Positions 3,307 to 59,600 of a DNA stretch of 64,000 bases are shown piece by piece. The DNA is from Malacoraja senta (Eukaryota). Under the pieces are notes generated by a model. It was not told the origin of the DNA and made no database searches. It saw nothing but the letters and a program-made list of their open reading frames with translations. Where the stretch lies: NCBI GenBank assembly GCA_038087875.1, contig JAXLNO010005151.1, positions 186,001-250,000 of the forward strand, given 5' to 3'. The number at the start of each line of letters is the position of its first letter. Within the stretch, counting starts at the first letter, position 1. Position numbers and translations under genes: made by a program.

Positions 3307-4053
3307 TAGACAATAGACAATAGGTGCAGGAGTAGGCCGTTCGGCCCTTCGAGCCAGCACCACCATTCAATGTGATCATGGCTGATCGTCCCCAATCAGT
3401 ACCCCGTTCCTGCCTTCTCCCCATATCGCCTGACTCCGCTATTTTTAAGAGCCCTATCTAGCTCTCTCTTGAAAACATCCAGAGAACCTGCCTCCACCGC
3501 CCTCTGAGGCAGAGAATTCCACAGACTCACCACTCTCTCTGATAAAAAGTGTTTCCTCGTCTCCGTTCTAAATGGCTTACTCCTTATTCTTAAACTGTGG
3601 CACCTGGTTCTGGACTCCCCCAACATCGGGAACATGTTTCCTGCCTCTAGCGTGTCCAAGCCCTTAACAATCTTATATGTTTCAATGAGATCCCCTCTCA
3701 TCCTTCTAAACTCCAGAATGTACAAGCCCAGCTGCTCCATTCTCTCAGCATATGACAGTCCCGCCATCCCGAGAATTAACTTTGTAAACCTACGCTGCAC
3801 TCCCTCGATAGCAAGAATGTCCTTCCTCAAATTAGGGGACCAAAACTGCACACAATACTCCAGGTGTGGTCTCACTGGGGCTCTGTACAACTGCAGAACG
3901 ACCTCTTTGCTCCTATATTTGATTCCTCTTGTTATAAAGGCCAACATGCCATTCGCTCTCTTCACTGCCTGCTGTACCTGCATGCTTACTTTCATAGACT
4001 GATGTACAAGGACCCCCAGATCCCGTTGTACTTCCCCTTTTCCCAACTTGACT
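3307..4053 (-). mobile_element. CR1-type LINE 3' fragment
   Basis: ORF 3396-4118 encodes a CR1 RT C-terminus (RPHLEYCVQFWSP, RRMRGDLIETYKI). (gacaata)n tail. Confidence 0.9.
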
Positions 4054-9354: not shown

Positions 9355-11552
9355 GAAGGAACTGCAGATGCTGGAAAATCGAAGGTACACAAAAATGCTG
9401 GAGAAACTCAGCGGGTGCAGCAGCATCTGTGGAGCGAAGGAAATAGGCAACTTTTCGGGCCGAAACCCTTCTTCAGACTGAAAGGGGGTGGGGAGAAGAA
9501 AGGAAAAAATGAAAAAAGGCGGAGGAGGAGCCCGAGGGCTGGGGGAGGGGAGGAGACAACCAGAGGGCTGATGGAGGGGAGGGGACAGCAAGGGCTAGCA
9601 GAGTTGGGAGAATTCAATGTTCAAGCTACCAGGATGTAGACTACCCAAGCGGAATATGAGGTGCATTTCCTCCAATTTACGGTGTTGCTCGCTGTGGCCA
9701 TGGAGGAGACCCAGGACAGAGAGGTCAGATACGGAATGGGAGGGGGAGTTGAAGTGCTGAGCCACCGGGAGGTCAAGTTGGTTATTGCGGACCGACCGGA
9801 GGTGTTCGTCGAAACGATCGCCAAGCCTCTGCTTGGTCTCACCGATGTAGATCAGCTGGCATCTAGAGCAGCGGATGCAATAGATGAGGTTGGAGGAGAT
9901 GCAGGTGAACCTCTGTCGCACCTGGAACGACTGCTTGGGTCCTTGGATGGAGTCGAGGGGGGAGGTGAAGGGACAAGTGTTGCATCTCTTGCGGTTGCAA
10001 GGGAAAGTACCCGGGGAGGGGGTGGTACGGGAGGGAAGGGAAGAATTGACAAGGGAGTTACGGAGGGAGCGGTCTTTGCGGAAGGCAGACATGGGGGGAG
10101 ATACATAGATACATAGAAAATAGGTGCAGGAGTAGGCCATTCGGCCCTTCGAGCCTGCACCGCCATTCAATATGATCATGGCTGATCATCCAACTCAGTA
10201 TCCCGTACCGGCCTTCTCTCCATACCCCCTGATCCCCTTAGCCACAAGGGCCACATCTAACTCCCTCTTAAATATAGCCAATGACCTGGCCTCAACTACC
10301 CTCTGTGGCAGAGAGTTCCAGAGATTCACCACTCTCTGTGTGAAAAAGTTTTTCCTCATCTCGGTCTTAAAGGATTTCCCCCTTATCCTTAAGCTGTGAC
10401 CCCTTGTCCTGGACTTCCCCAACATCGGGAACAATCTTCCTGCATCTAGCCTGTCCAACCCCATAAGAATTTTGTACGTTTCTATAAGATTCCCTCTCAA
10501 TCTCCTAAATTCTAGCGAGTATAAGCCAAGTCTATCCAGTCTTTCTTCATATGAAAGTCCTGACATCCCAGGAATCAGTCTGGTGAACCTTCTCTGCACT
10601 CCCTCTATGGCTATAATGTCCTTCCTCAGATTTGGAGACCAAAACTGTACGCAATACTCCAGGTGTGGTCTCACCAAGACCCTGTACAACTGCAGTAGAA
10701 CCTCCCTGCTCCTATACTCAAATCCTCTTGCTATGAAGGCCAACATACCATTCGCTTTCTTCACTCCCTGCTGCACCTGCATGCCCACTTTCAATGACTG
10801 GTGTACCATGACACCCAGGTCTCGCTGCATCTCCCCATTTCCTAATCGGCCACCATTTAGATAATAGTCTGCCTTCCCGTTCTTGCCACCAAAGTGGATA
10901 ACCTCACATTTATCCACATTATACTGCATCTGCCAAACATTTGCCCACTCACCCAGCCTATCCAAGTCACCTTGCAGTCTCCTAGCATCCTCCTCACAGC
11001 TAACACTGCCCCCCAGCTTAGTGTCATCCGCAAACTTGGAGATGTTGCTTTCAATTCCCTCGTCCAGATCATTAATATAAATTGTAAATAGCTGGGGTCC
11101 CAGCACTGAGCCTTGCGGTACCCCACTAGTCACTGCCTGCCATTGTGAAAAGGACCCGTTTACTCCTACTCTTTGCTTCCTGTTTGCCAGCCAGTTCTCT
11201 ATCCACATCAATACTGAACCCCCAATACCGTGTGATTTAAGTTTGTATCTTAAATCACACGGGAAGATGTGGCGAGTGGTGGGGTCACGTTGGAGGTGGC
11301 GAAACTGACGGAGGATCACTTGTTGTATGTGACGGCTGGTGGGGTGAAAGGTGAGGACTAGGGGGACTCTGCCCTTGTTGTGAGTGGGGGGATGGGGAGA
11401 GAGAGCAGTGTTGCGGGGTATGGCAGAGACCCTGGTGCGAGCCTCATCTATGGTGGAGGAGGGGAACCCCCGTTCCCTGAAGAATGAGGACACTTCAGAT
11501 GCCCTGGTGTGGAACGCCTCATCCTGGGAGCATATGCGGCGTAGACGGAGGA
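9355..11552 (-). mobile_element. Penelope-like retroelement (GIY-YIG endonuclease) interrupted by a CR1 insertion
   Basis: CNTCPF...NLIYCIRCSRCQLIYIGETKQRLGDRFDEH...VAQHFN is a GIY-YIG domain. The upstream PLE part (ERGFPSSTIDEA...RVPLVLTFHP) resumes after 11261. Confidence 0.88.
10105..11261 (-). mobile_element. CR1-type LINE 3' fragment nested in the PLE
   Basis: RT motifs GVPQGSVLGP and KFADDTKL in ORF 10195-11493, which is a PLE/CR1 chimera. (acatag)n tail. Confidence 0.9.
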
Positions 11553-11620
11553 ATGTTTACACTCTATTTGGAGACACAGAACAAAGAAGTGTCTGACCCA
11601 AAACATCATCTGTCCATTCC

Positions 11621-12341: not shown

Positions 12342-12930
12342 CAGAGAAACATATAAAATTGGTGCAGGAGTAGGCCATTTGGCCCTTCAAGCCAGCACCA
12401 CCATTCAATCTGGTCATGGCTGATCAACCAGAATCAGTACCCTGTTCCTGCTTTCTCCCCATATCCCTTGATTTCGTTAACCCTAAGAGCTAACTCTCTC
12501 TTGAATATATTCAGTGAATTGGTCTCCGCTGCCTTCTGTGGCAGAGAATTCCACAGATTCACAACACTCTGGGTGAAAAGGTTTTCCCCATCTCAATCCT
12601 AAATGGCCTACCCCTTATTCGTAAACTGTGACCCCTGGTTCTGGACTCCCCCAACATTGAGAATATTTTTCCTGCATCTAGTCTGTCAAATCCGTTATTA
12701 GTATTCTATTTCTATCAGATCCCCTCTCATCCTTCTGAATTCCAGTGAATATAATCCCAGTCGATTCATTCTTTTATTATATGACAGTCCCGCCATCCCG
12801 GGAATTAACCTGGTGAACTTTGCTGCACTCCTTCAATAGCAAGAATGTCCTTCCTCAAACTAGGCGACCAAGACTGCACAAAATACTCCAGGTGCAGTCT
12901 CACCAAGGCCCTGTATAACTGAATAGACTC
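12342..12930 (-). mobile_element. CR1-type LINE 3' fragment
   Basis: Same 3' UTR and RT end as 3307-4053. Confidence 0.85.
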
Positions 12931-14582: not shown

Positions 14583-15504
14583 CTTATTGGTAACTTTGTG
14601 TGATCTTATTTTGTTAGGATGCAAATTCTATGGGAACGCTTTCTCAATGAGTTAGATAATGATGTAGAAACAACGAACTGCAGATGCTGGTTTGTACCAA
14701 AGAGTGTCACAAAGTGCTGGAGTAACTCAACGGGTCAGAGGTGTTCTACAGCATCTCTGTAGATAAAGGATGGGTGATGCTGGGTGAAGCTTCAGGTTGG
14801 GATCCTTCTTCAGACTGATGTATCGGGTTGGGACCCTTCTTCAGAATAACCCTGCTTGAGACTGAAGTAGGGTCCCGACCCAAAGTGTCATCCAGCCTTT
14901 TTCTCCAGAGATGCTGCTGGTCTCGCTGAGTTACATTAGCACTCTGTGTCTAAGGTTGATAATGAGTTGTTCAATCCTGATGTTTTGTGATGTTAATTTC
15001 TGCATGTTCACAGGGCAGACTGTGAGAGTAAACAGTTGAAAAACTAGTCTAGCAGGAAATGTGTGGTATTTGAGTAAGTGTGAATGTGGGGCCTCTCCAG
15101 TGAGATGATTGGGGAACTCCCTGACAAAGGGGGATGTGGTGAACAAGTCACCAGGAGGTCATATCAAAGCAGAAGTTAAATATTACATTGATATTTTTAG
15201 TCTGCTCTTGATGTACTGGCATGGTGCAATCCGATTTGGACAACTTACTGTATATTGCAGCTCAAGATGATATAGATATATAGCATTGGAACAGGCTCTT
15301 CAGCCCACCAAGTCCACGCTGAACAGCGATCCCCATACAGTAGCAATATCCTATAGACTTGCAACAATTTATAATCTTTACCAAACCCTATTAAACTACA
15401 AACTCATCTTTGGAGTGTGGGAGGAAGCTGGAGCACCCAGGGAAAACCCACAGGTAGAATGTAAAAACTCCATACAGACTGATTCCCGGGATGGCAGGAC
15501 TTTC

Positions 15505-15950
15505 ATATGAGGAAAGACTGGATAGACTTGGCTTGTACTCGCTAGAATTTAGAAGATTGAGGGGGATCTTATAGAAACTTACAAAATTCTTAAGGGGTTG
15601 GACAGGCTAGATGCAGGAAGATTGTTTCCGATGTTGGGGAAGTCCAGAACAAGGGATCACAGTTTAAGGATAAGGGGGAAGTCTTTTAGGACCGAGATGA
15701 GAAAATCATTTTTCACACAGAGTGGTGAATCTGTGGAATTCTCTGCCACAGAAGGTAGTTGAGGCCAGTTCATTGGCTATATTTAAGAGGGAGTTAGATG
15801 TGACCCTTGTGGCTAAAGGGATCAGGGGGTATGGAGAGAAGGCAGGTACAGGATACTGAGTTGGATGATCAGCCATGATCATATTGAATGGCGGTGCAGG
15901 CTCGAAGGGCCGAATGGCCTACTCCTGCACCTATTTTCTATGTTTCTATG
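15505..15950 (+). mobile_element. CR1-type LINE 3' fragment
   Basis: Near-identical to the 3' end of 20897-22852. Confidence 0.85.
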
Positions 15951-17152: not shown

Positions 17153-17413
17153 GGCCTCACACACTGATCTATTACTACACCCTGAACCACGGGAGTACTC
17201 ATCTACCAGAATATAGTGTCGTGGGTGAACTGGATGGTTGTGAGATACAGTATTATGACAAAAACATGGTCATTACAGTTCCAAGACAGAAATGGATGGC
17301 GGCTGCATTTGACAGGAATTACTGGGTAACAAATACGGTCTCTGAAACTGGTTTCCATGGAATCATCAAAGGGCAAGTCGATGAATGGATGCGGAGGCAG
17401 AACGAAACTGCAA
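17153..17413 (+). CDS. MHC class I-like alpha1 domain exon (phase 1-1, 261 nt)
   Basis: Acceptor ...tttgtgtctag| and donor |gttagt. Translation (x)GPHTLIYYYTLNHGSTHLPEYSVVGELDGCEIQYYDKNMVITVPRQKWMAAAFDRNYWVTNTVSETGFHGIIKGQVDEWMRRQNETA aligns by eye to class I alpha1 (GxHxLxY, PEY..VG..D, PR..WM, YW, N86 glycan site NET). Confidence 0.93.
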
Positions 17414-18139
17414 GTTAGTTCATTCATTTCAATACATTTGAGTGTGACAATGTTCATAAAAAAACATCTCAAAGAAATTTCTCGCTGTGCCAGAGACCCA
17501 GGTTTGATCCTGACTAACGTTCTCCCTGTGAACACAGATATTTCCTCAGGTTCTCCTGTTCCGTCCCATACCTTGAAAATGTGAGAGTTTGTAGGTTAAT
17601 TGGGCTCTGTAAATTACTCTTGCTGTGCTGAGAATGGGTGAGGAAAGAGGGATTACATAGATGTGTAGGAGGAACTGAAGATGCTGGTTTACAGCAAGAT
17701 AGGCACAATGTGCTGGAGTAACTCAGCGGGACAGGCAGCATCTCTGGATACAAGGAATGGATGACTTTTCAGTTCAAGACCCTTCCTCAGACAGAGTGTT
17801 TCCTGACTTACTCCAGCATTTTGTGTCCATTTTGGGATAACATAGAACTAGTGTGAAAGATGATCGATGGTTGGCATGGAATTGGTGGGCAGAATGGCCC
17901 ATTTCCATGCTGAGTCACTAACCTAAGAACTGCAGATGCTGCAAATGTGAAATAAAAACCAAAAATTGCCATTGTCTGATGGGCTTCATTGTCAGTTTAT
18001 CACCATGGAAAACCTGTAATTACCTTATCAGTGATACTCCCTATGTCCAACCATGCCTCCCACTCCTGTCCTGTAACTTACACATTCTCACAATTCTGAA
18101 GCATTAATTTTGTATCTCTTTCGATAGGTTCCATAGGTA

Positions 18140-18206
18140 ACCAATATTTCAATGATTTGTAAAATGCTGTGCTTTCCAGCATTTTACAAATCATTGAAAT
18201 GTTGGT
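18140..18206. repeat. Near-perfect inverted repeat (30-bp stem, 7-nt loop)
   Basis: accaatatttcaatgatttgtaaaatgctg-tgctttc-cagcattttacaaatcattgaaatgttggt. The single deviation is a T:G pair. Confidence 0.9.
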
Positions 18207-19564
18207 GGCTTTTTGAATGGTTAAAATCCCTTGCGTACCTCACCAATTGTTTTATTACTTTTATTGACAAATTTAGAATGAAAAAGTTGTGTGAAATATT
18301 TAAAGGATAACCTAAATGTCATTGTGGTTCAGCCGTAGTGATGGTGCCGTAGTGCTATTGACCCAGGGTTGATCCTGGCCTCAGGTGCTGTCTGTACATA
18401 GTTTGTACGTACTCCCCGTGACCTGTGTGGGATTTCCCCGGGTTCCCCGGTTTCCTCCCACACTCCAAGCTGTATGCCAAAGGGGATCACTGGTCACTGT
18501 GGACTCTAAGGGCTGTTTTCGTGCTATATCTCTAAATATCTTGGGCACCAATTGTAAAGTAAGCTGTCCAAATCCATCTGCACCACACTTGTATATCCAT
18601 ATAAGTTGCAATTGGACATGTTTTATATTGTAAATCAATAAGTCCTATCACCATTACTGTGTTAATTCAATGACATTCGTAGTGTACCATTGAACAAAGC
18701 AGGACCAGGCGTGGGGGAACCATGGTGAGGTGGGGACAAAGGAGGACCTGGTGTGGGAGACTTTATAACTTTGTCCGGTGCCCTTTATGTGAAGAATCTT
18801 GACATACGTTGGGTTTACAAAACAAAGACTTTCACTGTGACTTGTCACATGGTCACAATAAAGTATCATTCATTCATGATTAATTATTGCTGAAAACATT
18901 GCTTTTTGTTACCTCTTCGGTTACACATTAAACAAATTATATTATTAATCTTTAACTGGACTAAAACAGGGTGAGGGTACAAACAGGGAACAATACATCC
19001 AAATATTATGCACTGGGCATAATTTCTATCAATTTTCCACATCTTTGCAATATTTATTATTATTTTCAAATTATATGTGAATACATGTGAATGACATTTA
19101 TTACATTATCATCTGATTCATTGAACCATGTTTATTGAATCATATTGCCTTCAAAATATTTTTTTAATTTGCATTATTTATGGTGCACATATTATCTGCA
19201 ACATTGTTATGTTTATGAGATTTATGAGGCATATTGTCGGGGCTCAAGGGTGTGAACAAGAGGGCGAGATTGGGCAAGCCAGGGCTTTATTCCATGGAGC
19301 ACAGGAGGCTGAGGGGTGATCATATAGGGGTGCTTAAAATCATGAGGGGAATTGATAGACTGTATGCCCAGAGCCTTTTACCCAGAGAAGGGGAATCAAA
19401 TAACCAGAGGACATGGGTTTAATGTGAGAGGGGGAAGATTTAATTGGAACTTGGGGGCAAACTTTGTGCTCAGAGAGTGGTCAGCATATGGAATGACCTG
19501 CCAGAGAATGGAGTTGCGGCAGGTACAATAACAATATTTAAAAGACACATGGACAGGGACATGC

Positions 19565-20042
19565 ATAGGTAGATAAAAGTGCTGGAGAAACTCAGCGGTT
19601 CAGGCAGCATCTATGGAGCGAAGGAAATAGGCAACGTTTCGGGCCGAAAACCCTTCTTCAGACTGATGTGAGGGTGGGTGGGAGGGGGGGAGTGGGGCGC
19701 AGGAAGAAGAAAGGAAAAGGTGGAGCCAGTGGGCTGAGGGAGAGCTGAGTAGGGGAGGAGAAAGTAAGGACTACCTGAAATTAAAGAAGTCAATGTTCAT
19801 ACCGTTGGGGTGTAAACTGCCCAAGCGAAATATGAGGTGCTGCTCCTCCAATTTACGGTGGTCCTCACTCTGGCCATGGACGAGGCCGAGGGCAGAAAGG
19901 TCGGATTTGGAATGGGAGGGGGGAGTTGAAGTGCTGATCCACCGGGAGATCAGGTTGGTTGTTGCGAACTGAGCGGAGGTGTTGGGCGAGGCGATCGCCA
20001 AGCCTGCGCTTGGTCTCACCGATGTAGAGCAGCTGACATCTA
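19565..20042 (-). mobile_element. Penelope-like element 3' end with hammerhead-like core
   Basis: GIY-YIG C-terminus (SHSKSDLSALGLVHGQSEDHRKLEEQHLIFRLGSLHPNGMNIDF), followed by the core at 19630-19663 and the tail. Confidence 0.85.
19630..19663 (-). ncRNA. Candidate minimal hammerhead ribozyme (PLE type)
   Basis: Minus strand GU-CUGAAGA-A-GGG-UUUUCGG-CCC-GAAAC-GUU-GCC: the hammerhead core boxes, stem II, and the palindromic AC/GU mini stem III. Stem I is very short and there is an extra A. Confidence 0.5.
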
Positions 20043-20896
20043 GAGAGAAACGTTTTGAATGATGTCTACCCATTGCAGGGTAAATGGGACTAGCTTAAAT
20101 GGGGTATCTTGATTAGCATGGACAAGTTGGGCCAAAGGGCTTGTTTCCCTGCTGTGTGACTCTCTCTATGACTGCTTTATAGCAAAGAGCGCTGCTGTCT
20201 CACAGCTCCAGTGATCGGGTTCAATCATCTCCAGTGCAGTCTGTGTGGAGTATAAGCATTCTCCCTGTGACAATGTTTGTTCTCCAGTTTCCTCCCACAT
20301 ACCAAAATGTGCTGAATTAGTAGATTAAGCCACCGCTGCAAATAGGTGGATTTGTGGCATTGATAGAAATGAGAAAGATCCGTTTTGGGGAAAATTAGTG
20401 TTGGAATAATTTTGTTCTCTGGGCTAGAGTGGGCTCAGGAGGCTGAAAGGCCTCTTTCTCTGTCACATGGATTTATGGGCCGTTATTTATCCTTGAATTG
20501 CCTTCTTTCTCAATTTAGTCAACAATGTAAAATTGAAGTAATTGTCTGGATTGAACTATTTAACAATTGTAGATGAAAGGAAGAGCAGAGGCTGCTTTCC
20601 TCCACACACAAAGTGCTAAGGAACTCAACGGGTCAAGCGGCATCTTTGGAGAACATGGGAAGGCAGATATTTCGGGTGAGGATCCTACTTCAGACTGAAG
20701 TTGGGACACGTTAGAACATGCTTTGTACTCACACTTGCAGTCCAGTGTTAGTTTTCAAGGATTTTTTGTTATTCACAGCTTGTAGTTGTTACATATTCAG
20801 CAGACAGAAGATGAGCAAACTAAAGCACCTGCAAAGCACAACTAAAAGACCGCAGAAAGAAGCTTGAAAAGAAGGCTCTTATCTAAACAAAGTACT

Positions 20897-22852
20897 TTCA
20901 AGAGAGAGTTAGATTTAGCTCTTAAGACGAAAGGAATCAAGGGATATGGGGGAAAAGGTTAGTTAAAACAAATGTAGGTCCCTTGCAGTCAGAAACAGGT
21001 GAATTGATCATGTGGAACAAGGACATGGCAGACCAATTGAATAACTACATTGGTTCTGTCTTCACTAAGGAAGACTTAATTAACTGCCGGAAAGAGCAGG
21101 GGACCGGGGGTCAAATGAGATGGAGGAATTGAGTGAAATCCAGGTTAGCCGGGAAGTGGTGTTAGGTAAATTGAATGGATTAAAGGCCGATAAATCCCCA
21201 GGGCCAGATAGAGTGCATCCCAGAGTACTTAAGGAAGTAGCCCCAGAAATAGTGGATGCATTAGTGATAATTTTTCAAAACTCTTTAGATTCTGGAGTAG
21301 TTCCTGAGGATTGGAGGGTAGCTAATGTAACCACACTTTTTGAAAAGGGAGGGAGAGAGAAGTGGGGAACCTGCTAGAGTCAGTTATTAAAGATGGGATA
21401 GCAGCACATTAGGAAAATGGTGAAATCATTGGACAAAGTCAGCATAGATTTATGAAAGGTAAATCATGTCTGACGAATCTTATAGAATTTTTCGAGGATG
21501 TAACTAGTAGAGTGGATAAGGCAGAACCAGTGGATGTGTTATATCTGGACTTTCAGAAGGCTTTCGACAAGATCCAACATAAGTGATTAGTATACAAACT
21601 TAAAGCACATGGTATTGGGGGTTCAGTATTGATGTGGATAGAGAACTTGCTGGCAGACAGGAAGCAAAGAGTAGGAGTAAACGGGTCCTTTTTAGAATGG
21701 CAGGCAGTGACTAGTGGGGTACCTCAAGGCTCAGTGCTGGGACCCCAGCTATTTACAATATATATTAATGATTTGGACGAGGGAATTGAATGCAACATCT
21801 CCAAGTTTGTGGATGACACGAAGCTGGGGGGCAGTGTTAGCTGTGAGGAGGGTGCTAGGAGGCTGCAAGGTGACTTGGATAGGCTAGGTGAATGGGCAAA
21901 TGCATGGCAGGTGCAGTATAATGTGGATAAATGTGTGGTTATCCACTTTGGTGGCAAAAACAGGAAAGTAGACTATTACCTGAATGGTGGCCGATTAGGA
22001 AAAGGGGAGATGCAACGAGACCTGGGTGTCATGGTACACCAGTCATTGAAAGTAGGCATGCAGGTGCAGCAGGCAGTGAAGAAAGCGAATGGTATGTTAA
22101 CATTCATAGCAAAAGGATTTGAGTATAGGAGCAGGGAGGTTCTTCTGCAGTTGTTCAGGGTCTTGGTGAGACCACACCTGGAGTATTGCCTACAGTTTTG
22201 GTCTCCTAATCTGAGGAAGGACATTGTTGCCATAGAGGGAGTACAGAGAAGGTTCACCAGACTGATTCCTGGGATGTCAGGACTTTCATATGAAGAAAGA
22301 CTGGATACACTCTGCTTGTATTCGCTAGAATTTAGAAGATTGAGGGGGGATCTTATAGAAACTTACAAAATTCTTAAGGGGTTGGACAGGCTAGATGCAG
22401 GAAGATTGTTCCCGATGTTGGGGAAGTCGAGAACAAGGGGTCACAGTTTAAGGATAAAGGGGAAATCTTTTAGGACTGAGATGAGAAAAACATTTTTTAC
22501 ACAGAGAGTGCTGAATCTCTGGAATTCTCTGCCACAGAATGTAGTTGAGGCCAGTTCATTGGCTATATTTAAGAGGGAGTTAGATGTGGCCCTTGTGGCT
22601 AAAGGGATCAGGGGGTATGGAGAGAAGGCAGGTACAGGATACTGAGTTGGATGATCAGCCATGATCATATTGAATGGCGGTGCAGGCTCGAAGGGCCGAA
22701 TGGCTTGCTCCTGCACCTATTTTCTGTGTTTCTATGTTTCTAAAAGCAGGAATGGGGTACTGATTCTAGATGCAGGCATGATCATATTGAATGGCGGTGC
22801 TGGCTCGAATGGCCGAATGGCCTGCTCCTGTGCCTATTTTTCTATGTTTCTA
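20897..22852 (+). mobile_element. CR1-type LINE, ~2 kb 3' portion with doubled 3' tail
   Basis: Open 338-aa RT ORF 21629-22645 (GVPQGSVLGP, KFVDDTKL). Upstream KSPGPD/RVLKE/YLDFQKAFDK motifs are broken by stops and frameshifts. Confidence 0.92.
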
Positions 22853-23338
22853 TAATTAGTATACATTCGGCTATTGGTGGTGTTTCTTGAAAACACGAAG
22901 ACGAGAGAATGTAAAGGATCTGCAGAACAACTAAAAGACTGCAGAAAGCAGCTTGAAAAGGAGGCTCTTCATCTATACAACATAATTATGTTTTATTCAG
23001 CTATCATTGTTTGTAGAGTTTCTTATTGGTATGAAAACATCATCCAAGTTTTGACCCTTCCTTATTACTCCTGGTCCCAGGGGCATGGTTGGCATTAGCT
23101 CATTACATTCATCCTAATAAAGGGTTGGTGTTCACAGTTGTGCCTAGATTTTTATCAATTACAACCTTGAGTTCACAAACTGTTCTTTGTCTCTGGGCTA
23201 AAGTTCACAGACTCTCCTTTTCAAGGAGTGAGCAGTTTTAAGCAAACTGACTTCAGCAAATCCTTACAAATTCCATCACCCCCCCCCCCCCACTTTGATT
23301 CATCAATCAATGCCAGAGGGAATGAATCATCTAAGTAA

Positions 23339-24019
23339 AGGGGCCTGTCCCACTTACGTGTCCTTGGAATGCAAATTACGCGTTGAGCCACGATGGTCCG
23401 GCGAAGGTCGGGTGCGATTACATGCGTACGCACAGCCGTCTGGAGCGCGTGACGTTATTTGAAGATGGACACAAAGCTGGAGTAAGCCAGTGGGACCGGC
23501 AGCATCTCTGGAGAGAAGCAATGGGTGACGTTTCATGTCGAGACTCTTCTTCAGTCTGAAAAGAAGGGTCTTGACCCGAAACATCACCCATTGCTTCTCT
23601 CCAGAGATGCTGCCGTCCCGCTGAGTTACTCCTGCATTTCGTGTCTATCTTCAATTTTTTTGGCCCCGCTCTGGGAGTAGAAGTGGGGGCGGATCCGGAC
23701 TGCAACGGCTGTGAGCCCCAGGCCGAGTTCGGCGATCGTTCGCCTGCTTCTGCTCCTGTTGAAAGTGAGACTTTGCGTCGCGCCAGGGTCTTGGGCCTGT
23801 CCCACTTTGGCCGTCAGTTCCGCGACAGGCCGTTGGCGCGCGAAGATTTAGTTCACTACAAAATTATTGGAGCCCCGCGCGATGTCGCGCACAACTCCAT
23901 AACCCTCCGCGCTTCCAAGTGGGACCGGCCCCGCGCGGCCATACGATGCCCGTGCGCTTCAACGCGACCACAAGGTCGCATAATTTGTGTGCCAAGGACA
24001 CGTAAGTGGGACAGGCCCT
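23339..24019. mobile_element. PIF/Harbinger-type MITE
   Basis: TIRs gggcctgtcccacttacgtgtccttgg / ccaaggacacgtaagtgggacaggccc. TAA at 23336-23338 and 24020-24022. TIR start is related to the MITE at 4461. Confidence 0.85.
23461..23652. repeat. Palindromic PLE-tail element nested in the MITE
   Basis: gaagatggacacaaagctggagtaa...cttcttcagtctgaaaagaagg...ttactcctgcatttcgtgtctatcttc: two PLE tails joined back to back. Confidence 0.85.
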
Positions 24020-24367
24020 TAAGAATACCAAGGAAAGGTAGCGCAGCTACACATCACTGGATATCTTTAACCTGTTCAATGCCACCGCCGAGTACACTAG
24101 GGGTCATGGCCAATAGTGAAAAATAAACTTGGCAGTGAACAGCTTAATGGTCTCCATATTTTAGAGAAAGCCTTCAATGCCCATGAGGGGTGAGCCTTAT
24201 TATATCTATGTTTCTCTAAATATAGGAAGCACTTTTGTGGTAAAAGATGGGGCAGCTCGGGCCTCGAAAAGATCCAACCTTATGTGCAGCTTTATATTTG
24301 TTTATATGCAATAAGCAAAAAGAACACAATAGAAGATAAAACATGATAATAACTATAAGCAAAGCCA

Positions 24368-40100: not shown

Positions 40101-40282
40101 TGTTGGAAGAATGATCAAACTCACACATAGTGGTTAGAATCCATAGTCTTTTATTAGTAACTCTGCAGAGGAAACACAAGGTGCTTTCTTCTCAGCATGC
40201 TTACTACCAGTCTACCAGAGAGAGAGAGAGCTGTCTAATAAGCCTGTGGGCGGAGCCACAGTATGAGTGACACTAATCTACA
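40101..40282 (-). mobile_element. Solo LTR (182 bp)
   Basis: TG...CA termini and perfect 5-bp TSD gatag (40096-40100, 40283-40287). Minus strand carries CCGCCC and AATAAA. Confidence 0.7.
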
Positions 40283-40321
40283 GATAGGCACAGGGATAAG
40301 TTTCGGTTTATTATTGTCACG

Positions 40322-40612
40322 TTTAGTTTCGAGGTACAGCATGAAAATAGGCCTTTTGGCCCACTGAACCTGTGCTGACTAACGACCACCCAAATATTAG
40401 TTCTATCCTACACACTAGGGACAATTTACAGAAGCCAAAAAACTTACAAACCTGCACGTCTTTGAATGTGACGGAACTGTAGCACCCGGAGATAACTCAC
40501 ATGGTCACAGGGAGAATGTATGAACTCTATATAGACAGCACCCATTGTCAGGATTGAACTTTGGTCTGTGGTACTGTAAGGCAGCAACTTTCCCTCTGTG
40601 CCACTGTGCTGC
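40322..40612 (-). mobile_element. V-SINE (HE1-like)
   Basis: Reverse-complement SINE consensus. Confidence 0.75.
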
Positions 40613-41917
40613 CCATGTACTGAGGTAGAGTGTAAAGCTTTGTTTTGCATGCTATCCAATTGGATGAGGTAACAAAATACATATATATGATCATCAAACT
40701 CAAGTACTGTAGGTAGAGCAAAGGGGAAGGTACAGAGTGTGGCATGTAGTTCTCAGCAATGTAGCACACCAGTTCCATTAGATAAGTGTTTCGACACGAA
40801 ACGTGACACATTCCTTCTCTCCAGAGATGCTGCCTGACCCGTTGAGTTACTCTAGCATTTTGTGTCTATCTGCGGTTTAAACCAGCATCTACAGTTCCTC
40901 CCTACATAGTTCTATAAACAAAGTCCACTGTCTTTAATGGGGTAGTGGTCAATTGGACAGTACCCTAGCTTATGGAACGATCATTCAGAAGCCTGATTTT
41001 CTCCTCGGTTATTAAGTTTCCGAGTAAGCCATTTGGTCCTCTAACCTGCCCACCATTCAATATGACCATGGCTGACGTTCCTCAGGCATCAACTCCTGTT
41101 CGATATCAGTTCCTCATTGCACTCAGTTCTCCAATTTAAGTTTAATTAAGTTAACTAACGCCACATTAAATGCTTCCAATGATTTTGTCTTCACAAATCT
41201 CTGGCGCCAGAGAATGACCACACTCTGCAAAAAGAGATTTTGTAAACAAATGACTGGTCTCTTTTATCTCTTATTGAAGAGGAGTGAAAATACTGCCAAT
41301 TTTAAGCTTGTCCCCTCCCCAATTGACCCTCATTTCGTAACTTGTCAATTATTTATTATTGTCAATAATATGCCCTAGTGAAAAGATTTGCCGATGGTAT
41401 TAGTTTATTATTGTCACATGAACTGTGATATAGTCAAAAGTTTGTCTGTGTGTTATCCAATCAGATCATACTACACATGTGCAATCAAGCCATCCACAAG
41501 TAGAACAGTGCAAAGAGAAAAATTCTCAGAGTGCAGAATATCGGGTTACAATATCATAGCATTACAGTTACAGAGAAAGTGCAGATCAAAAAGAGTTGCA
41601 AGGATCACAATGAGATTGGTTGGAAGATCAGGGCAACATCTTATCTTACATGAGAACCATTCAGTAGTCCAATAACAGTGGGGAAGAAGCTGTTCCTGAA
41701 TTTAATGGTACGTACTTTCAAACTTTCTTGTGTACTGTCTTAACAGGGAGCGTGCGATCCCTTTTAAACCACGTGGTTGGTTGATGGTGACGAAAGAGGC
41801 AAAATGGGGCAGATGTGGACAGTAACTTGGTTGTTGTAGTGGACTGAAGAATATTTTGTGGTGGGTGACTGTGCAAGTTTTACTGAAGATGAAAATAACC
41901 ATCTTACTGTCTTGTAG

Positions 41918-42184
41918 TTTCCCCTGAGGTCACTCTCGCTGCCCGCCCTGATGATCATTCAGTCCTGTACTGCACTGTGTTTGGATTTTACCCACCGGCC
42001 ATCAATGTCAGCTGGTTGCAGAATGGTCAACATGTCTCTGAGACCAAATCTTCTGGGGTCATACCCAACAACGATGGAACATATCATCTAAGGTCTGTCC
42101 TTGAGTATGATCCGTATGATGGGAAACAGTATTCCTGTCATGTCGATCACAGCAGCCTGCCCGGTGGGAAGACCATCATCTGGG
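41918..42184 (+). CDS. MHC class I-like alpha3 (Ig-C1) domain exon (phase 1-1, 267 nt)
   Basis: Acceptor ...cttactgtcttgtag| and donor |gtaaga. Translation SPEVTLAARPDDHSVLYCTVFGFYPPAINVSWLQNGQHVSETKSSGVIPNNDGTYHLRSVLEYDPYDGKQYSCHVDHSSLPGGKTIIW has the C1-set motifs C..GFYP....W, PN.DGTY and YSC.V.H.SL. Confidence 0.95.
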
Positions 42185-44867
42185 GTAAGAACGTTAAATA
42201 TTCTTTCATAGATAATCATTATCTTCTGTTGTTTCCATTTTAATCATCATGAATACATCCCATATTCCAAGATGCTTAAACTTTCTTTGTTTAGTGGTGT
42301 TGCTCTAAGTAATCACGTAATCAGCACCCACTCTCCGCATGAGCAGAAGACTTTGTCAACAGAACATTTATCAAAAGTAAATAAATAACTAATATATAAG
42401 GAAGGAGTATTTGAGATTCTCAGTGGTGGAACTGAAATCTATGAAAGGTATGTTTAAATAAAAAATGAATCTTTCCTCATGATGTGATTAACAGCAAGGC
42501 ACTGGGGGAGTACATGCCCCAATCTGAATCAATGGTCCGAAGTGGAAATGATTGAGAGCTTCATGTTCCTTGGCATGAATTTATCCAATATTCTGTAAAG
42601 GACTGACCACATAGCCAAGGAGGCACACCGACACCTCTACTTCCTCAGGAGACTGAGAATATTCATCATGTCTCTGGTGACTCCAGCAAACATCTATAGA
42701 TGCCGCTAGAGAAAGCATGTTGTTGGGTTGCATCACATCTTGATTTGGGAACTGCACTGCCCAAGACTGCAAGAATATACAAAGAGTTAAAGATCATCAC
42801 ACAGGCCAGACTTCCCACTATTGGCTCAATCTACACTAGGTTGCCTTGGAAAACGAGACTTATCCCAACCTTCCTCCTTCTTGCTCCCATCAGGCATTAG
42901 GTACAGAAAGTTGAAAATATGCACTGCCAGACTCAGGAACACCCCCTTTCCACCTGTTAACAGGCTTCGGAAGGGTCCTTCCATAATGTAGGTTTAATGC
43001 CCGATTCACCTCAACCTCATTGAACATTGAACATTGTCCATGGAACTGATGTGTTACAATGCTGAGAACTATATTCTGTACTCTGTATCCTCCTCTTTGC
43101 TCTATCTATTGTTTTTGAGTTTGTATTTATGTATAGTTTTATAATTTGTTTGGATAGCATACAAAACAAACTTTGCTCATATTTTGAAACATCTGGCGTT
43201 AATAAAACTAAACCTAATGAAGTAAGTTCCATGACGCAAGTTACAGATTCAGCAACGAAAAATATAACTGCCTGACAAACAGCGATCGTAGAAGTTTGAT
43301 TCCAAGTATGCTGCACTAACCTACACAAATGCTCACTTTTGAAGATTCCCTCGAACAATGCACAACTAAGGAATCTGATGTTTCACTCTGAAGACTGTTG
43401 ACATACCCCAGAACTTAATTTCCAACCTATCTATGTATCATCAGCAATCTAGGCTACAGCGCCACCAGTCCCTTCATCTGCTCTTAATACCAACGATAAG
43501 TAGTTCACTTTCTTGCATTGATTCCCAACCTGCAGTTGCAGTTTCCCAACCAGAACACTCCTTTAAGACAACTCTCTGCTTGCTCTTAATTGTTTTTCCA
43601 TTCATGCTAATTATTACCCCCAATGTCATAAGCCATGTGCCTTTGCATCACTTGATCAGATATCTTATGAAAATCCAGATATTGTGGCGACATCTGGTGG
43701 TCAGGCCACTTATTGCTAGAACCCTCGTCAGGGGAGCTGGGACTATCACGTGACAGGGTTTTGGTGGGAGTTGGTGATGAGTTAATCGCCAGTCAACTGG
43801 TGTGCCCGATAACAACGGCAGGAACTTTGCTCAAGTCCTTACTAAACGCGAGTGGGCCAAAACTGTATTTCTTTAAAAAAACATTGATTTGTTCACGACG
43901 TTTGGATCTCTACAATATATTGTATTTCTTTTGTTTCTCATTCCAATTTTGTTACCTATTCTGCTTTTCCATCATTTGGTTTATGAATTTTAGGCTTTTC
44001 ACACCTGCTGCTCGAATATACATTGTCTACGGGTTCCTGTTGCATTTTCAAAGAGTTCTAATCAATTTCTCAAACAAAGTTTGAAGAAGGGTCCCAAAAC
44101 GAAACGTCACCTGTCCATGTGTAAGAAGAAACTGCAAATGCTGGTTTACACCAAAGATGGACACAAATTGCTGGAATAACTCAGCTGGTCAGCCAGCATC
44201 TCTGGAGAAAAGGAATAGGTGATGAATCCATGTTCGCCAGAGATGCTGCCTGTTCCGCTGAGTTACTCCAGCATTTTGTGTCTATTATGTATATTCTTTC
44301 CACTGACTGGTTAGCATGAAACAAAAGCTTTTCACTGTACCTCAATACATGTGACAATAAACTAAACTAAAGCTTTTGTGTAAATCAGTATCTGCATCTC
44401 TTTCTTTCTACAATTTTCCTGATAATGCCCTGATAATGCACTTTATTGTTTTGTTATTACTTAAATGTTCTGCCATTATTGAAAGGAATCCAGCATTTTC
44501 CCCAAAACAAATGTTAGTTTATATAGGGTTAAAGCTTTCTGCTTTCAATTCACCTTCTTTCATGAATTAAGTTGTGGCTGTGATGGTGCCATATATCATA
44601 GTTGTACAGAACATATATTGTCCCTTTGCCATGCTGCAGAACTCCGTGATTCAAAACACCATATCATCTTATATACCTTGAAAAGCGCCAAATATAGACA
44701 CAAAATGCTGGAGTAACTCAGCGGTCAGGTAACATCTCTGGAGAAAAGGAATAGGTGGCATTTCGGGTCGAGACCCTTCTTCACCCTGAAGTCTTCAGAC
44801 AGTGCCCATCTATTTAGCTGCACAGCTTAACAATTGATTTGTAAAATTATGCATTCTTATTTTTCAG

Positions 44868-44975
44868 AAGGAAATAGGAAGAAAGACAGGCACATAGGCC
44901 TTATTGCCGTGTGTGTGCTGATATTGCTGGCTATTGTCTTGGCAGTAATTGTTTGGTGGAGAAAAAAGAGGAGAG
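44868..44975 (+). CDS. Connecting peptide/transmembrane exon of the MHC class I-like gene (phase 1-1, 108 nt)
   Basis: Acceptor ...ttcttatttttcag| and donor |gtaaga. In frame with the alpha3 exon: EGNRKKDRHIGLIAVCVLILLAIVLAVIVWWRKKRR, i.e. a hydrophobic span followed by a basic stop-transfer. Confidence 0.88.
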
Positions 44976-45227
44976 GTAAGATGGAAAAATTGTGATGCAC
45001 TGTTGCTAGTAAAGGTATTGGGCTTGAAGAAATGATCGATCTCAAGTAGGATAAGGCAGCAGCTACACCTGAAATGCCTCGACAGTCACCACTGTCAACT
45101 AGCCTTTGTGCTGTTGTTAAATGTTTCTGATAATCAGATATTTAAAAATTGTGAATTCAGTGTAAAAAAAAGTTAAACATTATGGATTCACTGCCCCAAA
45201 TCCTAGAAATATCAATGAGTCATTAAA

Positions 45228-53557: not shown

Positions 53558-54535
53558 TGAGACCAGTGTCAAAATACACAATGAATATAGACCTCTCCAT
53601 CTCTATGTAAATATAGTTAAATCTTTAAAAGGAAACATAAATGTTAAAAAAAAGCAAAGATAAAAAGACAAAAAGAAAAAGAAAAAACAAAACCCCCCTA
53701 AACTAAAAAAAAATTAAAAAAATTGGATAATAATAAAATAAGAATAAAAATAATATAAATAAATAAAACAAAACAGAGCAAAACCGAATCTGAACTGAGA
53801 AATTCAACAATTTACGTCTGTTTGTCGTCAAGTCCGTTCCACCCTATGAAGGTAAAATAATTTTTATAAAGGTTAAAGAGGGAACAATTTATGTTGTATG
53901 AAAGTGTTCAATAAATTTTCCCCAAGTCTTATCAAATTGAACCAAGGGTTCAACAATGTCACTTCTGATTTTTTCTAAATTTAAACATGATATCGTTTCA
54001 GAATACCACTGGAGTGTGGTCGGAGGGTTGGAATCTTTCCATTTAATGAAAATAAATCTTCTGGCAATTAATGTGGTAAAAGCAATCAACCGATGGGCGG
54101 AGTGGGACAAATGAATAGAATCTAACATTGGTAACCCAAAAATTGCAGTAATAGGATGAGGTTGTAAATCTATACCTAAGACTACCGAAATAGTATCAAA
54201 AATTTATTTCCAATATTTTTCCAAAAGAGGGCAGGACCAAAACATATGGGTCAGTGATGCCACTTCAGAGTTACATCTGTCACAGGTAGGATTTATATGA
54301 CCATAAAAACGAGCTAACTTGACTTCCGGTGGCGCTATGGAGGCTTGAGTCCAGTACCAACTAGCTCCGTGCCGAAGAATCTGAAAACGGGAGAAAATCG
54401 GGTCTTACCTGCAGCGATCGCGATCTGAACGGCTGCCTGCCGCGTGACGTCATCAGGCGCGCGACTTTGACGGTATGTCGACGCAACATACCCCCCCCCC
54501 GTGTGCCAAAAAAACCCGTTAAAGGGAAACCACCG

Positions 54536-55531
54536 ATGGAAGAGGTAGGCCTAACTGAGGCCTCGGCCTCAGGTACAATGACGGCCCAGGAAGACCCAAC
54601 GAAGAAATCAAAGCAGAAAAAGTCTGAAATTGAAGATCTTAAAACTTTTCTCGCTGTTGAAATTAAACAGATTCAACTACAGTTGAAAACCTTTGAAGGA
54701 AAATTGAATTTTAAAGAGGAACTTAACTCTTTTAAGGTAGATTTTAAAGCAGAAATGCTTTCTACCGTTCAAGAAATACTGGAAGTCTGGAAGAGGTCGA
54801 GGGACGATGAGGTCAAGGAACAGATGGAAGTGCTGGAAGCCAGGTTCGTTTCGGTGGAATCGAACGCTAATATGGAGGTGGTCCCCATTCATCAAGCACT
54901 TGATCAACATAGAACAGCGATAACCGAACTTGAGAAATGGGCGGCGACAAGTGAGGAAACTGTAAATCGACTCCTTATTGAAAACCAACGCCTCTCCGGT
55001 ATGGTGATCAAATTAAGTGATAAGTGTACCGATTTGGAGGGGCGTCAAAGACGCAAGAATTTAAGAATTGTAGGGGTGAAAGAAGGAAGTGAGAGGGAAA
55101 TGGGCCCTCGGGATTTTGTGGCAGACCTACTACAAAAAGCCTTAAAATTGGATCAAAAACCTTCACTCGGTCGAGCACATAGAGCGCAGGGGCGTCGTAC
55201 ACAAGATGATGCCCATCCAAGACAAATTATAGTAAAGGTGCAACTTGATCATGAATTTGACGAGATAATGAAGAAAATCGTCCGAAGCGGACAGCTCTAT
55301 TTTGAAGGTGCGAGGTTCAGTATTTACCGAGATTATCCGGCAGAGGTCTTCAAGAAAAGAGCACTGTTCACTGAGACAAAAAGAATACTGAAGAAGGTAC
55401 CTGATTTGAGATACGGCTTGCTTTACCCCGCAAGACTAAGAGTCACCTACAAGCAAAAGGAGCAATTTTTTACAGACCATGAAAAAGCACTGGAATATGC
55501 CAAAGAAATCGGGAACGTGACCACAGACTGA
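54536..55531 (+). CDS. L1 ORF1p (coiled coil, RRM, CTD), uninterrupted
   Basis: From ATG 54536: coiled-coil region, LEGRQRRKNLRIVGVKEG, RAHRA, PRQIIVK, IYRDYP, YGLLYPARLRV. Confidence 0.9.
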   Translation: MEEVGLTEASASGTMTAQEDPTKKSKQKKSEIEDLKTFLAVEIKQIQLQLKTFEGKLNFKEELNSFKVDFKAEMLSTVQEILEVWKRSRDDEVKEQMEVLEARFVSVESNANMEVVPIHQALDQHRTAITELEKWAATSEETVNRLLIENQRLSGMVIKLSDKCTDLEGRQRRKNLRIVGVKEGSEREMGPRDFVADLLQKALKLDQKPSLGRAHRAQGRRTQDDAHPRQIIVKVQLDHEFDEIMKKIVRSGQLYFEGARFSIYRDYPAEVFKKRALFTETKRILKKVPDLRYGLLYPARLRVTYKQKEQFFTDHEKALEYAKEIGNVTTD

Positions 55532-56147
55532 AGAATTTACATTACTCCTCAGGAGTCAAGGATTAACGGGACTTCACCAGATTTAAAAGGACCTTTAAAG
55601 TTCTTTTAAGAGCTTTAAGGACATTCGAAAACCGAAATGGACGGTGGACATTGGAGAAACCCGTGGGTTTTTTTTTGGTTTTTTTTAAATCTTTTTTTAT
55701 TTTTAGTATAAACTTTAAGAACAATAATATCATAGTTGTGACCAATTGTTATTAATCACTATTACTATTTAGTATATTCATATCTAACTATATATGTAAC
55801 TGCTAATACTTATTAAATATCTATATTACTACTAAAATTATTAACATTTATATTACTCATAAAAATTTAATACTGGGTATGATCGATAACAATGATTAAT
55901 AACTAACAATCTCTGGTTAACGTAGAAATGAGTTACATACTTATATTCTACAGGAAGATGTGCAAGAGGTAATTCAGCCTACGTCATAATAAGGTTTGAC
56001 GGTTTTTCTCTTTATTTTTCAATTTAAAATTAAATTTATAGATTTAGCGAAGATATTAATATGGTATGTAGAGAATAATAACGTTGTGAATTTATGTTGT
56101 TTTCGGACTTTTCTGCAGGGATATGTGCGTATATATGTATGCATATG

Positions 56148-56150
<3 letters not shown>

Positions 56151-56199
<49 letters not shown>

Positions 56200-56230
56200 T
56201 GTGTGTGTGTATGTAGGGGTATATATATAT
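56151..56230. repeat. (TA)n/(TG)n microsatellite in the L1 inter-ORF spacer
   Basis: Direct reading. Confidence 0.95.
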
Positions 56231-56610
56231 GTTTGCTACTCCCAAAGAAGTTAATTGATTGTCAGAAATATTCTTTCTTTTTTTTTTCGGGCACGGAGCT
56301 GGGAATTTTTTTTTTACAAAGGCTACGGAAGTCTTTAGAATTCTAGCCACGTTAGTGTGGCTATCACTAACTACACTAATTGTAGATGTAGTTTTTTTTC
56401 TTTCACCCTATACTAACCAATTCTATCACTTTTTTCACTTTAAATATTTTTATAACTTAATGTTTGAATGGAACAACAAGACTAATTCAAGGAGATGTGT
56501 TCGGAAGAGCGATGTATATGATTTTAAATTCATCTATTCGAGGTTCGGGAGCAGGGTCAGGTTTTATGTGTTGCACCTTCTGCTCGGTTATAGACCACCT
56601 TAGAAACAAT

Positions 56611-59600
56611 ATGCAAGATGTTAATATGACAAGAGGGGGTCAGGGAATAACATTTTGTAGTTGGAATGTTAAGGGAATCAATGAACCAATTAAGAGAGGT
56701 AAAGTTTTGGCACATCTAAATTCAATCAAAACAGATATAATATTCCTTCAAGAAACACACCTTAAAAAGGAATCTCAACATAGACTTAAAGCTAAGTGGA
56801 TTGCTGAATCATATCATTCCTCTTTTTCCCATAAGTCCAGAGGAGTTGCAATATTAATTCGTAAAGGAATACCTTTTACGAATTCATCAACAATAGCGGA
56901 TATTGATGGTAGATATATTATATTAGTTGGAGAGTTAAATGGAGAGAAAGTGATTCTTCTTAATGTATATGGGCCTAATTTTGATAACCCTATGTTTTTT
57001 AATAAAACATTTAATAAAATTCCTGAATTTACACAATATAAATTAATAATTGGAGGAGACTTCAATTGCACATTAGATTCATACTTAGATAGATCATCAA
57101 GGCAAAAAAAAGTAAAATCTCAATCAAGTGTATTTTTAAATTCATTTATTAATACCACTAATATTAAGGATGTCTGGAGAATTGAAAATCCAACTGGACG
57201 GGAATATTCATTTTACTCACCAGTACATAAAACATACTCAAGAATAGATTATTTTTTAGTTGACTCCACGTTTATCCCATTTACTTACAACTCAAAACAC
57301 CATAATATTATAATCTCAGATCACGCACCTGTAACATTCATGATTAAATTAAATGGAATGTCCGAGAAACAAACATATTGGAGATTTAACCCACAAATTT
57401 TGAACGAAAGATCATGCGAAGAATATCTTACTAAACAGATTCAAATATTTTTTGTGGTATATGACAACCCTGACACACCTACTTCTCTTATGTGGGAAAC
57501 GTTTAAAGCGTTTGTTCGAGGTGCATTAATTTCTGCTCAAGTATTTTATAATAAAGAGAACAGGATTAAACAACAAACATTGGAAAGGGAAATCAAGCAA
57601 CAAGATATAGAAAATGCGAGAATGCCATCTATTTTAAAACATAATAAAATTGCTGTATTGAAATATAAATTAAACAAAATGTATTCAGAACAAGTAATAA
57701 AACTTTATCAAAAAACAAACAATTACATTTTGAGTTTGGAGACAAACCACAAAAACTATTAGCACGTCAGTTACGAAAAATGGAAGGGGAAAAAATAATT
57801 CATAAAATTAGAACAGAGACAGGAGAATTATTAAAAATGCCCAAGGATATAAACGAAAGATTTCTCCAATACTATCATAATCTTTATTCAACTAAAACTG
57901 TAGTACAACCAGAAGGAATAGCAGATTTTTTACTAAAATGTAATTTAAAAGGTTTAGATTCAAACGATAGAGAATTATTAGAAAGGGAGATTACGATAAA
58001 GGATATTGAGGAGTCTATTGGCTCTTTAAAAAATGGTAAAGCAGTAGGACCAGATGGTTTAGGCTCTGAATTCTATAAAAAAAATTATGACTTGCTCTCC
58101 CCACGTTTACAAAGGCTGTATGAGCATATCTATACTCAACAGAAACTTCCAGATACTTTAAATGAATCTATAATAACACTTATTCCTAAAGTTGATAAAG
58201 ATCCGGAAGATCCGGGATCATATAGAGCAATTGCACTTTTAAATACAGATCAGAAAATATTAACTAAAATACTAGCGCATAGATTAAGTACAGTGATGAA
58301 TAAATTAATACACCCTCACCAAACAGGCTTTACTCAGAAACGGTACTCATATTATAATCTAAGAAGATTATTTAATATTATTTATTCTAAGAGAATTATT
58401 AATGAAGATCTAGCAATAATCTCACTTGACGCTGAAAAAGCATTTGATCAGGTTGAATGGTCTTATTTATTTTCGGTGATGGAAAATATGCAGCTAGGGG
58501 AGAAATTCTGCACATGGATAAAACTGTTATATACAAACCCTACGGCTAGAATATTAACAAACCAAAGGTTGTCATCTAAATTCAGCCTATCTAGAGGTTG
58601 TAGACAAGGATGCCCGTTATCTCCATTATTATTTGCGCTTGCTATTGAGCCACTCGCAGAAAGAGTTAGGGGTCATCCGGAAATACATGGGTATAACACA
58701 AAGGACACAGTGAATAAAATTTCTCTATACGCAGATGATGTACTAATTTACATTACAAAACCAGAAATTAGTATTCCAAACTTATTAAAGCTAATAACCC
58801 AATTTGGTTCACTCTCAGGATACAGAATAAATTGGAATAAAAGTGAAATTATGCCAATAAGGGAACACAACAAACAGATAATACAACAATTTCCATTTAA
58901 AATAGTAAACGAAAAATTTAAATACCTAGGCATTTACGTAACTAAGATATATACATCATTATTTAAAGCAAATTTCCCCCCATTACTGAACAAACTACAT
59001 AAGAATATTCAATATTGGAAAACACTTCCTATCTCAATGGTTGGCAAAATTAATGCCATAAAAATGATTTTTTTACCGCAAATATTATACCTTTTTCAGA
59101 CAATTCCGATATATTTGTCAAAAAACTTTTTTAAAAAATTGGATTCCATTGTTAATGATTTTATCTGGGATTATAAGAATCATAGGATAAATAAAAGACA
59201 TTTGTGTAAATCAAAAATAAATGGAGGCTTGGTTTTACCCAACTTTCTGTTTTATTTTTGGGCAGTTAATATTAAAAATATGAATTTCTGGTTGGAAGAA
59301 ATAGATCAACAACTAGATTGGTTAAAAATGGAAAAGGAAGATTGTTTACCTTTTGATATCGGCTCGATATTATTTGCTACGTCTAAATTAAACAAAAAAA
59401 ATTGTAGGAAAACCCTATAATATTTAGTGCTATACGAATTTGGAAACAATTAAAAAAGACATTAAAATTAGATAATTTATCACTTTTTCTTCCAATTGTG
59501 AATAACCCTTTGTTTAAGCCCTCATGGTTGGACAGGGGTTTTACACAATGGAAGAATTATGGAATTAAAAATATGGGACAACTTTACAAGGAAGGCACCT

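Follow-up and report, generated by a model that had tools for sequence, protein, structure and literature searches.

The closest described relatives of the gene analyzed here are three-domain class I chains of the major histocompatibility complex (MHC), named in their sources as class I "F10 alpha chain-like" or "MR1-like" proteins, in which the Pfam model MHC_I (PF00129) spans alpha1 and alpha2 and is followed by a C1-set domain. These relatives, gathered from the alpha1 domain by an exhaustive profile-free search, occur in Leucoraja erinacea, Rhinoraja longicauda, Amblyraja radiata, sawfish, stingray, manta, and many sharks, and the normal gene structure in the family consists of leader, alpha1, alpha2, alpha3, transmembrane (TM), and short cytoplasmic exons. 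Here, we describe a member of this family in a 64-kb stretch of the Malacoraja senta genome (contig JAXLNO010005151.1, positions 186,001 to 250,000; hereafter, the window), where alpha1, alpha3, and TM exons are intact but repeat DNA takes the place of the 279-nt alpha2 exon that the F10-like genes of other skates keep. In our judgment, the gene is probably a young alpha2-deleted copy, most likely a null allele or a pseudogene, of the skate class I family.

The skate proteins closest to the window gene are Amblyraja radiata XP_032898133, Leucoraja erinacea XP_055521884 and XP_055486429, and the Rhinoraja longicauda XP_078272153 cluster. Compared with skate relatives, the window exons share 85-93% protein identity in alpha1 (88-93%, or 76-80/86 residues, for the proteins just named), 93-94% in alpha3 (82-83/88 residues), and 89-97% in the TM exon, where 34 of 35 residues equal those of Amblyraja, and they are identical to none of the relatives' proteins. 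Ten Rhinoraja proteins encoded on a single chromosome fall into one 90% cluster, and at least eight of the ten are full length, at 334 aa; in Leucoraja, the family is represented by two loci. Judged by these sequence relationships, the window gene is a member of a conserved, multi-copy elasmobranch non-classical class I family and, given the number of full-length Rhinoraja paralogues, of a family evolving by birth and death, where dead copies are to be expected.

The single domains were also compared. Against the PDB (phmmer), window alpha1 matches 9CH4 chain A best (6e-37, ~62% identity over 84 residues) and also matches ~24 classical class I chains from various vertebrates (3e-9 to 4e-4), while the full Amblyraja chain matches 9CH4 at 9e-118. 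Deposited as an "Ig-like domain-containing protein," 9CH4 chain A is a solved relative from the same family and has alpha1, alpha2, and alpha3, whereas the window gene is without alpha2. Possibly, 9CH4 is one of the CD1-like UFA/UGA molecules of PMC12562908. Literature searches yielded lists of the named lineages (UBA, UDA, UEA, UFA, and UGA) but no sequence-level assignment of the window gene to any of them. Searched alone against Pfam, the alpha1 exon had no match, and alpha3 matched the C1-set domain (3e-20). Measured against the makeup of a class I heavy chain, the gene therefore has alpha1 and a C1-set domain followed by a TM segment, and lacks the alpha2 half of the platform.

The original prediction, made from the letters of the window, had described three intact phase-1 exons with good splice sites and a 212-codon in-frame product, all of which we found again:

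17153-17413, plus strand: alpha1 exon, 261 nt, phase 1 at both ends, open, running from GG after acceptor ag to CAA before donor gt
41918-42185, plus strand: alpha3 exon, 268 nt, Ig C1-set domain, phase 1, open, running from TT after acceptor ag to GGG before donor gt
44868-44975, plus strand: exon for connecting peptide, TM segment, and start of the cytoplasmic tail, 108 nt, phase 1, open, running from AA after acceptor ag to GAG before donor gt

Joining alpha1 directly to alpha3 gives A+TT = Ile, in frame, for a total of 637 nt, or 212 codons, through the TM segment. As a side observation, the Cys in the alpha1 motif LDGCEIQYYD (~17236-17238) is found family-wide, including in 9CH4, and has no counterpart in classical class I alpha1.

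The alpha2 site in three skates and in the window

We mapped the exons of three comparison loci, from Rhinoraja (L001), Amblyraja (L002), and Leucoraja (L003), which provides the comparison with related species that had been proposed alongside the original prediction. In all three, alpha2 sits between alpha1 and alpha3. The exon phases of these genes are the same as in the window gene, and the window introns are colinear with all three loci at 85-93% identity (~85% to Rhinoraja and 88-93% to Amblyraja and Leucoraja). In base-level alignments, homology with the relatives stops at 35747 and restarts at ~37207; between these breakpoints, Leucoraja has 1,422 bp containing alpha2, and the 1,459 bp that stand there in the window bear no resemblance to the Leucoraja segment. 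About 1.4 kb, consisting of alpha2 with ~480 bp upstream and ~660 bp downstream of it, was lost and replaced by 1.46 kb of repeat DNA. The parts of the locus around this site are as follows:

17414-24575, plus strand: 5' part of the former alpha1-alpha2 intron, colinear to 18837, then lineage-specific repeats
33172-35747, plus strand: remainder of the alpha1-alpha2 intron, colinear with sequence ending ~480-500 bp upstream of alpha2 in the three skates
35745-35757, no strand assigned: filler at the left deletion junction, 13 nt, a perfect inverted copy of 35678-35690
35748-37206, no strand assigned: replacement patch, 1,459 bp of readable repeat DNA, no alpha2 remnant
37207-41917, plus strand: 3' part of the former alpha2-alpha3 intron, colinear from 664 bp downstream of the Leucoraja alpha2
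48392: end of colinearity with both the Rhinoraja and Amblyraja loci, with transposon DNA alone beyond, to 64000

Searches at the protein level agree with this map. When the full-length proteins of relatives were aligned to both strands of the window by tblastn, their alpha1, alpha3, and TM parts were found at 1e-46 to 1e-54, and residues 111-203, which make up alpha2, had no match in any of the six frames. When only the alpha2 domains were used as queries, under permissive tblastn settings (word 2, E up to 100), chance matches alone were returned from either strand, with E values of at least ~0.6, which confirms the earlier observation that nothing alpha2-like is present. A degenerate alpha2 remnant within the patch was also considered and ruled out, as blastn (word 7) against the relatives' alpha2 regions came back empty.

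The composition of the patch and its left edge offers some indication of how the exon was lost. Two parts of the patch (35771-35946 and 36792-37211) share 79-81% identity with the 3' part of a long interspersed nuclear element (LINE) at 59338-59923, on the minus strand, and a third (36052-36766) is similar to a different repeat that also occurs in the Amblyraja locus. The LINE piece is missing ~97 nt of its 3' end and so is not a standard insertion. The 13-nt inverted filler, for its part, reads as a signature of fold-back, error-prone break repair. We propose that a double-strand break in the intron would have been repaired with the loss of ~1.4 kb, including alpha2, and that the repair would have captured LINE and other repeat DNA (1.46 kb) and left the short fold-back filler at the left junction; alternatively, a LINE insertion may have come first, followed by a deletion. 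If the resulting gene were transcribed, alpha1 would join alpha3 in frame. The original prediction came with three readings: a half-groove chain encoded in the germline, an allele or pseudogene produced by recent deletion of alpha2, and an assembly artefact. The second fits best, with colinear introns bracketing a patch at the alpha2 site.

Age of the loss and fate of the copy

The remaining exons carry information on when alpha2 was lost. In four-way alignments, the Amblyraja and Leucoraja loci differ by 2.3%, the window stands ~9.6% from that pair, and Rhinoraja stands at ~13.5%, a pattern that fits either a third skate or an older paralogue as the source of the window. Changes unique to the window number 75/1820 in the introns (4.1%) and 4/529 in the exons (0.76%), such that the exons have changed ~5 times more slowly; ~22 exon changes would have been expected had the exons drifted over the whole branch. 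The four observed changes, two synonymous and two non-synonymous, all lie in alpha1, with none in alpha3. This difference indicates that, over most of the branch, the exons were either under constraint themselves or kept alike by homogenisation with paralogues that were, which in turn suggests that the loss of alpha2 came late. After a late loss, recent relative to the age of the copy, intact frames are expected by default and provide no argument for function. The pairwise ratio of non-synonymous to synonymous substitution rates (dN/dS) between the window and the three relatives over alpha1 and alpha3 (0.26-0.40) mirrors the history of the family, not that of the window copy. Since a chain lacking half of the ligand-binding platform would presumably have lost its function, the copy is most likely a null allele or a pseudogene.

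Beyond the deletion, the two ends of the gene were also considered. In relatives, the leader exon precedes alpha1 by 15-32 kb, and colinearity places that of the window gene before the window's first base. At the other end, a 13-codon terminal cytoplasmic exon (DYQ.I.PNQN..C) lies 4.4-6.8 kb after the TM exon in relatives, and regex, blastn-short, and colinearity searches did not find it in the 19 kb that follow the TM exon here, up to the window end. The terminal exon may have been lost through a further lesion or displaced past the end of the window.

Public sequencing runs were searched with sampled words of the exons, and none contains all of those of alpha1 or alpha3 (best 0.68-0.77). Four runs were aligned over 41600-45050, the alpha3-TM region. 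Two of them, X4 and X5, cover introns and exons alike, which identifies them as genomic DNA, probably of this species, and their contigs are identical to the window over the intron/alpha3 border; variant sites amount to ~0.7% in intron and exon alike, at varied fractions, and fit several near-identical copies or alleles. Run X1 covers exons only, repeats apart, and is thus RNA, with contigs that begin or end at the TM exon borders. One X1 contig, unbranched at the junction, has 28 unaligned letters followed by 41916-42113 with 1 difference in 198 nt, so that AG precedes alpha3. Given that alpha2 ends in ...AAAAG in three relatives and alpha1 in ...GCAA, this AG points to an alpha2-type partner exon rather than to alpha1. 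Because X1 contains 0.08 of the alpha1 words and bears another organism label, it says little about the window locus. The alpha1-alpha3 junction (GAAACTGCAA joined to TTTCCCCTGAGG) was seen in none of the RNA or protein data searched, the RNA runs being not clearly of this species, and the protein databases contained no alpha2-less product among matches of 219-696 aa and no fragment of 47-150 aa that resembles alpha1.

Several observations weigh against the view that the window gene is a young, probably dead copy. The comparison loci may be paralogues, not strict orthologues, of the window gene. Four exon changes are too few to demonstrate relaxed selection. The remaining exons have no stop or frameshift, their splice sites are good, and the join is in frame. 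Finally, the organism label of X1 differs from that of the DNA runs that match the window exactly.

The alternative that fares best is that the locus encodes a functional germline alpha1-alpha3-TM class I chain, part of an amplified alpha2-less skate subfamily, that acts as an HLA-G2-like homodimer or receptor ligand. We consider this unlikely. The intact, in-frame exons and their fivefold greater conservation relative to introns on the window lineage are what such a chain would show, and the alpha2-less HLA-G2 isoform is reported to form an active homodimer; however, a late deletion explains the exon conservation equally well, and the ~0.7% differences among the same-species DNA contigs would make near-identical copies too young for intact frames to be informative. 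Further, alpha2 is kept by every annotated relative. The idea of a germline half-groove chain raised by the original prediction is compatible with the intact, in-frame exons and splice sites, but nothing positive speaks for it: no alpha1-alpha3 transcript was seen, and no terminal exon was found within the window. A more specific version holds that a single deletion was later amplified and that the copies have been kept as an expressed germline counterpart of HLA-G2, which might pair in class II style or serve as a ligand or decoy for receptors of alpha1/alpha3; this we regard as more doubtful still.

Assembly, unread letters, and surrounding repeats

Returning to the deletion itself, the absence of alpha2 could in principle be an assembly artefact, caused by the collapse or mis-joining of near-identical paralogues. 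The setting is one where errors of this kind might be feared, as the family is multi-copy with units at least 90% similar, the transposon load is heavy, and repeat DNA lies at the junction. Nevertheless, in each of three species a single locus is colinear with both flanks, the left junction falls within unique sequence and carries a specific fold-back filler, no repeat common to both sides of the alpha2 site could drive a mis-join, and the X4 and X5 DNA contigs equal the window exactly within 41600-45050. An artefact is accordingly very unlikely.

A second concern is raised by the unread letters of the window, which has no soft-masking and contains three runs of N (28805-29253, 29312-29933, and 29951-30235; 1,356 letters), room enough for a 279-nt exon. 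When the window was screened for inverted termini flanked by an 8-bp target duplication, one element emerged, and this region lies within it:

24576-33171, no strand assigned: hAT-like insertion, 8,596 bp, with 13-nt terminal inverted repeats (CAGTGGTTCTTAA) and an 8-bp target site duplication (CTCCAAAG/CTCTAAAG)

The Rhinoraja locus (L001, ~29119-29127) retains the empty site, with a single CTCTAAAG, and is matched by the two insertion flanks of the window when joined. The entire N stretch (28805-30235) falls within the insertion, and the gap edges and two readable islands consist of GT-rich simple sequence. In addition, the intron upstream of alpha2 in all relatives maps past the gap, to 33172-35747, and the alpha2 site lies 5.5 kb downstream of the gap, in readable sequence. 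With the gap inside a lineage-specific insertion and the alpha2 site mapped downstream of it, a hidden alpha2 is effectively excluded, and we hold its presence in the N stretch to be extremely improbable. The original prediction had likewise judged the gap an unlikely place for alpha2, as the Rhinoraja empty site and synteny now bear out, and had placed it in two nested hAT elements; the outer one is upheld by its terminal repeats, target duplication, and empty site, but the second, nested one was not confirmed. The insertion also houses a 103-bp satellite array (25107-28481; ~31 copies, 91% matches, higher-order periods of 214 and 312), just before the gap.

The remaining possibility, that the gene is natively a class II-type W-category chain with class I-like motifs, has next to no probability and was rejected: a distal domain followed by C1-set and TM is indeed the class II and W-category layout, and W-category MHC with class I motifs exists in cartilaginous fish (PMC8713811), but the nearest relatives, at 85-93% identity, are three-domain chains with MHC_I across alpha1 and alpha2, and the alpha2 site is a mapped deletion.

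The rest of the window is rich in retroelements. A LINE at 54365-60020 (plus strand) has long open frames of 388 aa (no Pfam match), 432 aa (AP-endonuclease), and 546 aa (reverse transcriptase) and may be young or active; the patch that replaces alpha2 represents a diverged fragment of this LINE family. A copy of the same LINE family lies ~0.8 kb downstream of alpha2 in Amblyraja (L002 54548-57648), and Leucoraja is without a copy. A Penelope-like retroelement at 9598-11556 (minus strand) has a reverse transcriptase followed by a GIY-YIG nuclease domain, and further Penelope-like pieces occur at 3313-3693, 12345-12722, 15475-15950, and 21587-22742, with a terminal part of ~390 bp found at least 5 times in the window. 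Within the 5' part of the former alpha1-alpha2 intron lies a reverse transcriptase fragment (21587-22642), and a Rhinoraja copy (L001 9397-9782) shares 94-97% identity with some of the Penelope-like copies. Among the annotated relatives, four NCBI models of Leucoraja (P0152, P0166, P0167, and P0169) run the class I gene together with a GPR139-like receptor gene that lies downstream, and one fused isoform also skips alpha3 (alpha1-alpha2-TM); the fused models are probably annotation read-through artefacts.

Comparison with known two-domain chains

Taken as one locus, the window gene would be an unremarkable loss of the kind that birth-and-death evolution brings to MHC class Ib clusters. It is useful chiefly as a clear case, resolved to the base, in which break repair probably removed an exon and transposon DNA filled its place. 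Two described systems are close enough in architecture to merit comparison. The first is HLA-G, whose G2 and G6 isoforms have the same alpha1-alpha3(-TM) order as the predicted window product, reached via an in-frame phase-1 join. HLA-G2 arises by exon skipping of an intact gene, whereas the window gene is without the exon in its DNA. HLA-G is related to the window gene only through the class I fold, and any dimerisation or receptor binding of the window chain would be hypothetical.

The second system comprises the W-category WA and WB chains (Okamura et al. 2021), which, like the window gene, have two extracellular domains together with class I-like features and occur in cartilaginous fish. 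These chains are natively two-domain and are encoded by paired alpha and beta genes, in contrast to the window gene, whose relatives are three-domain and for which no head-to-head partner chain gene, or second MHC-like gene, was found in the window. Should the alpha2-less chain prove to be expressed, it would be the first two-domain class I chain to be encoded in the germline and a natural experiment on the interconversion of class I and class II architectures, which the work on the W category had brought into question.

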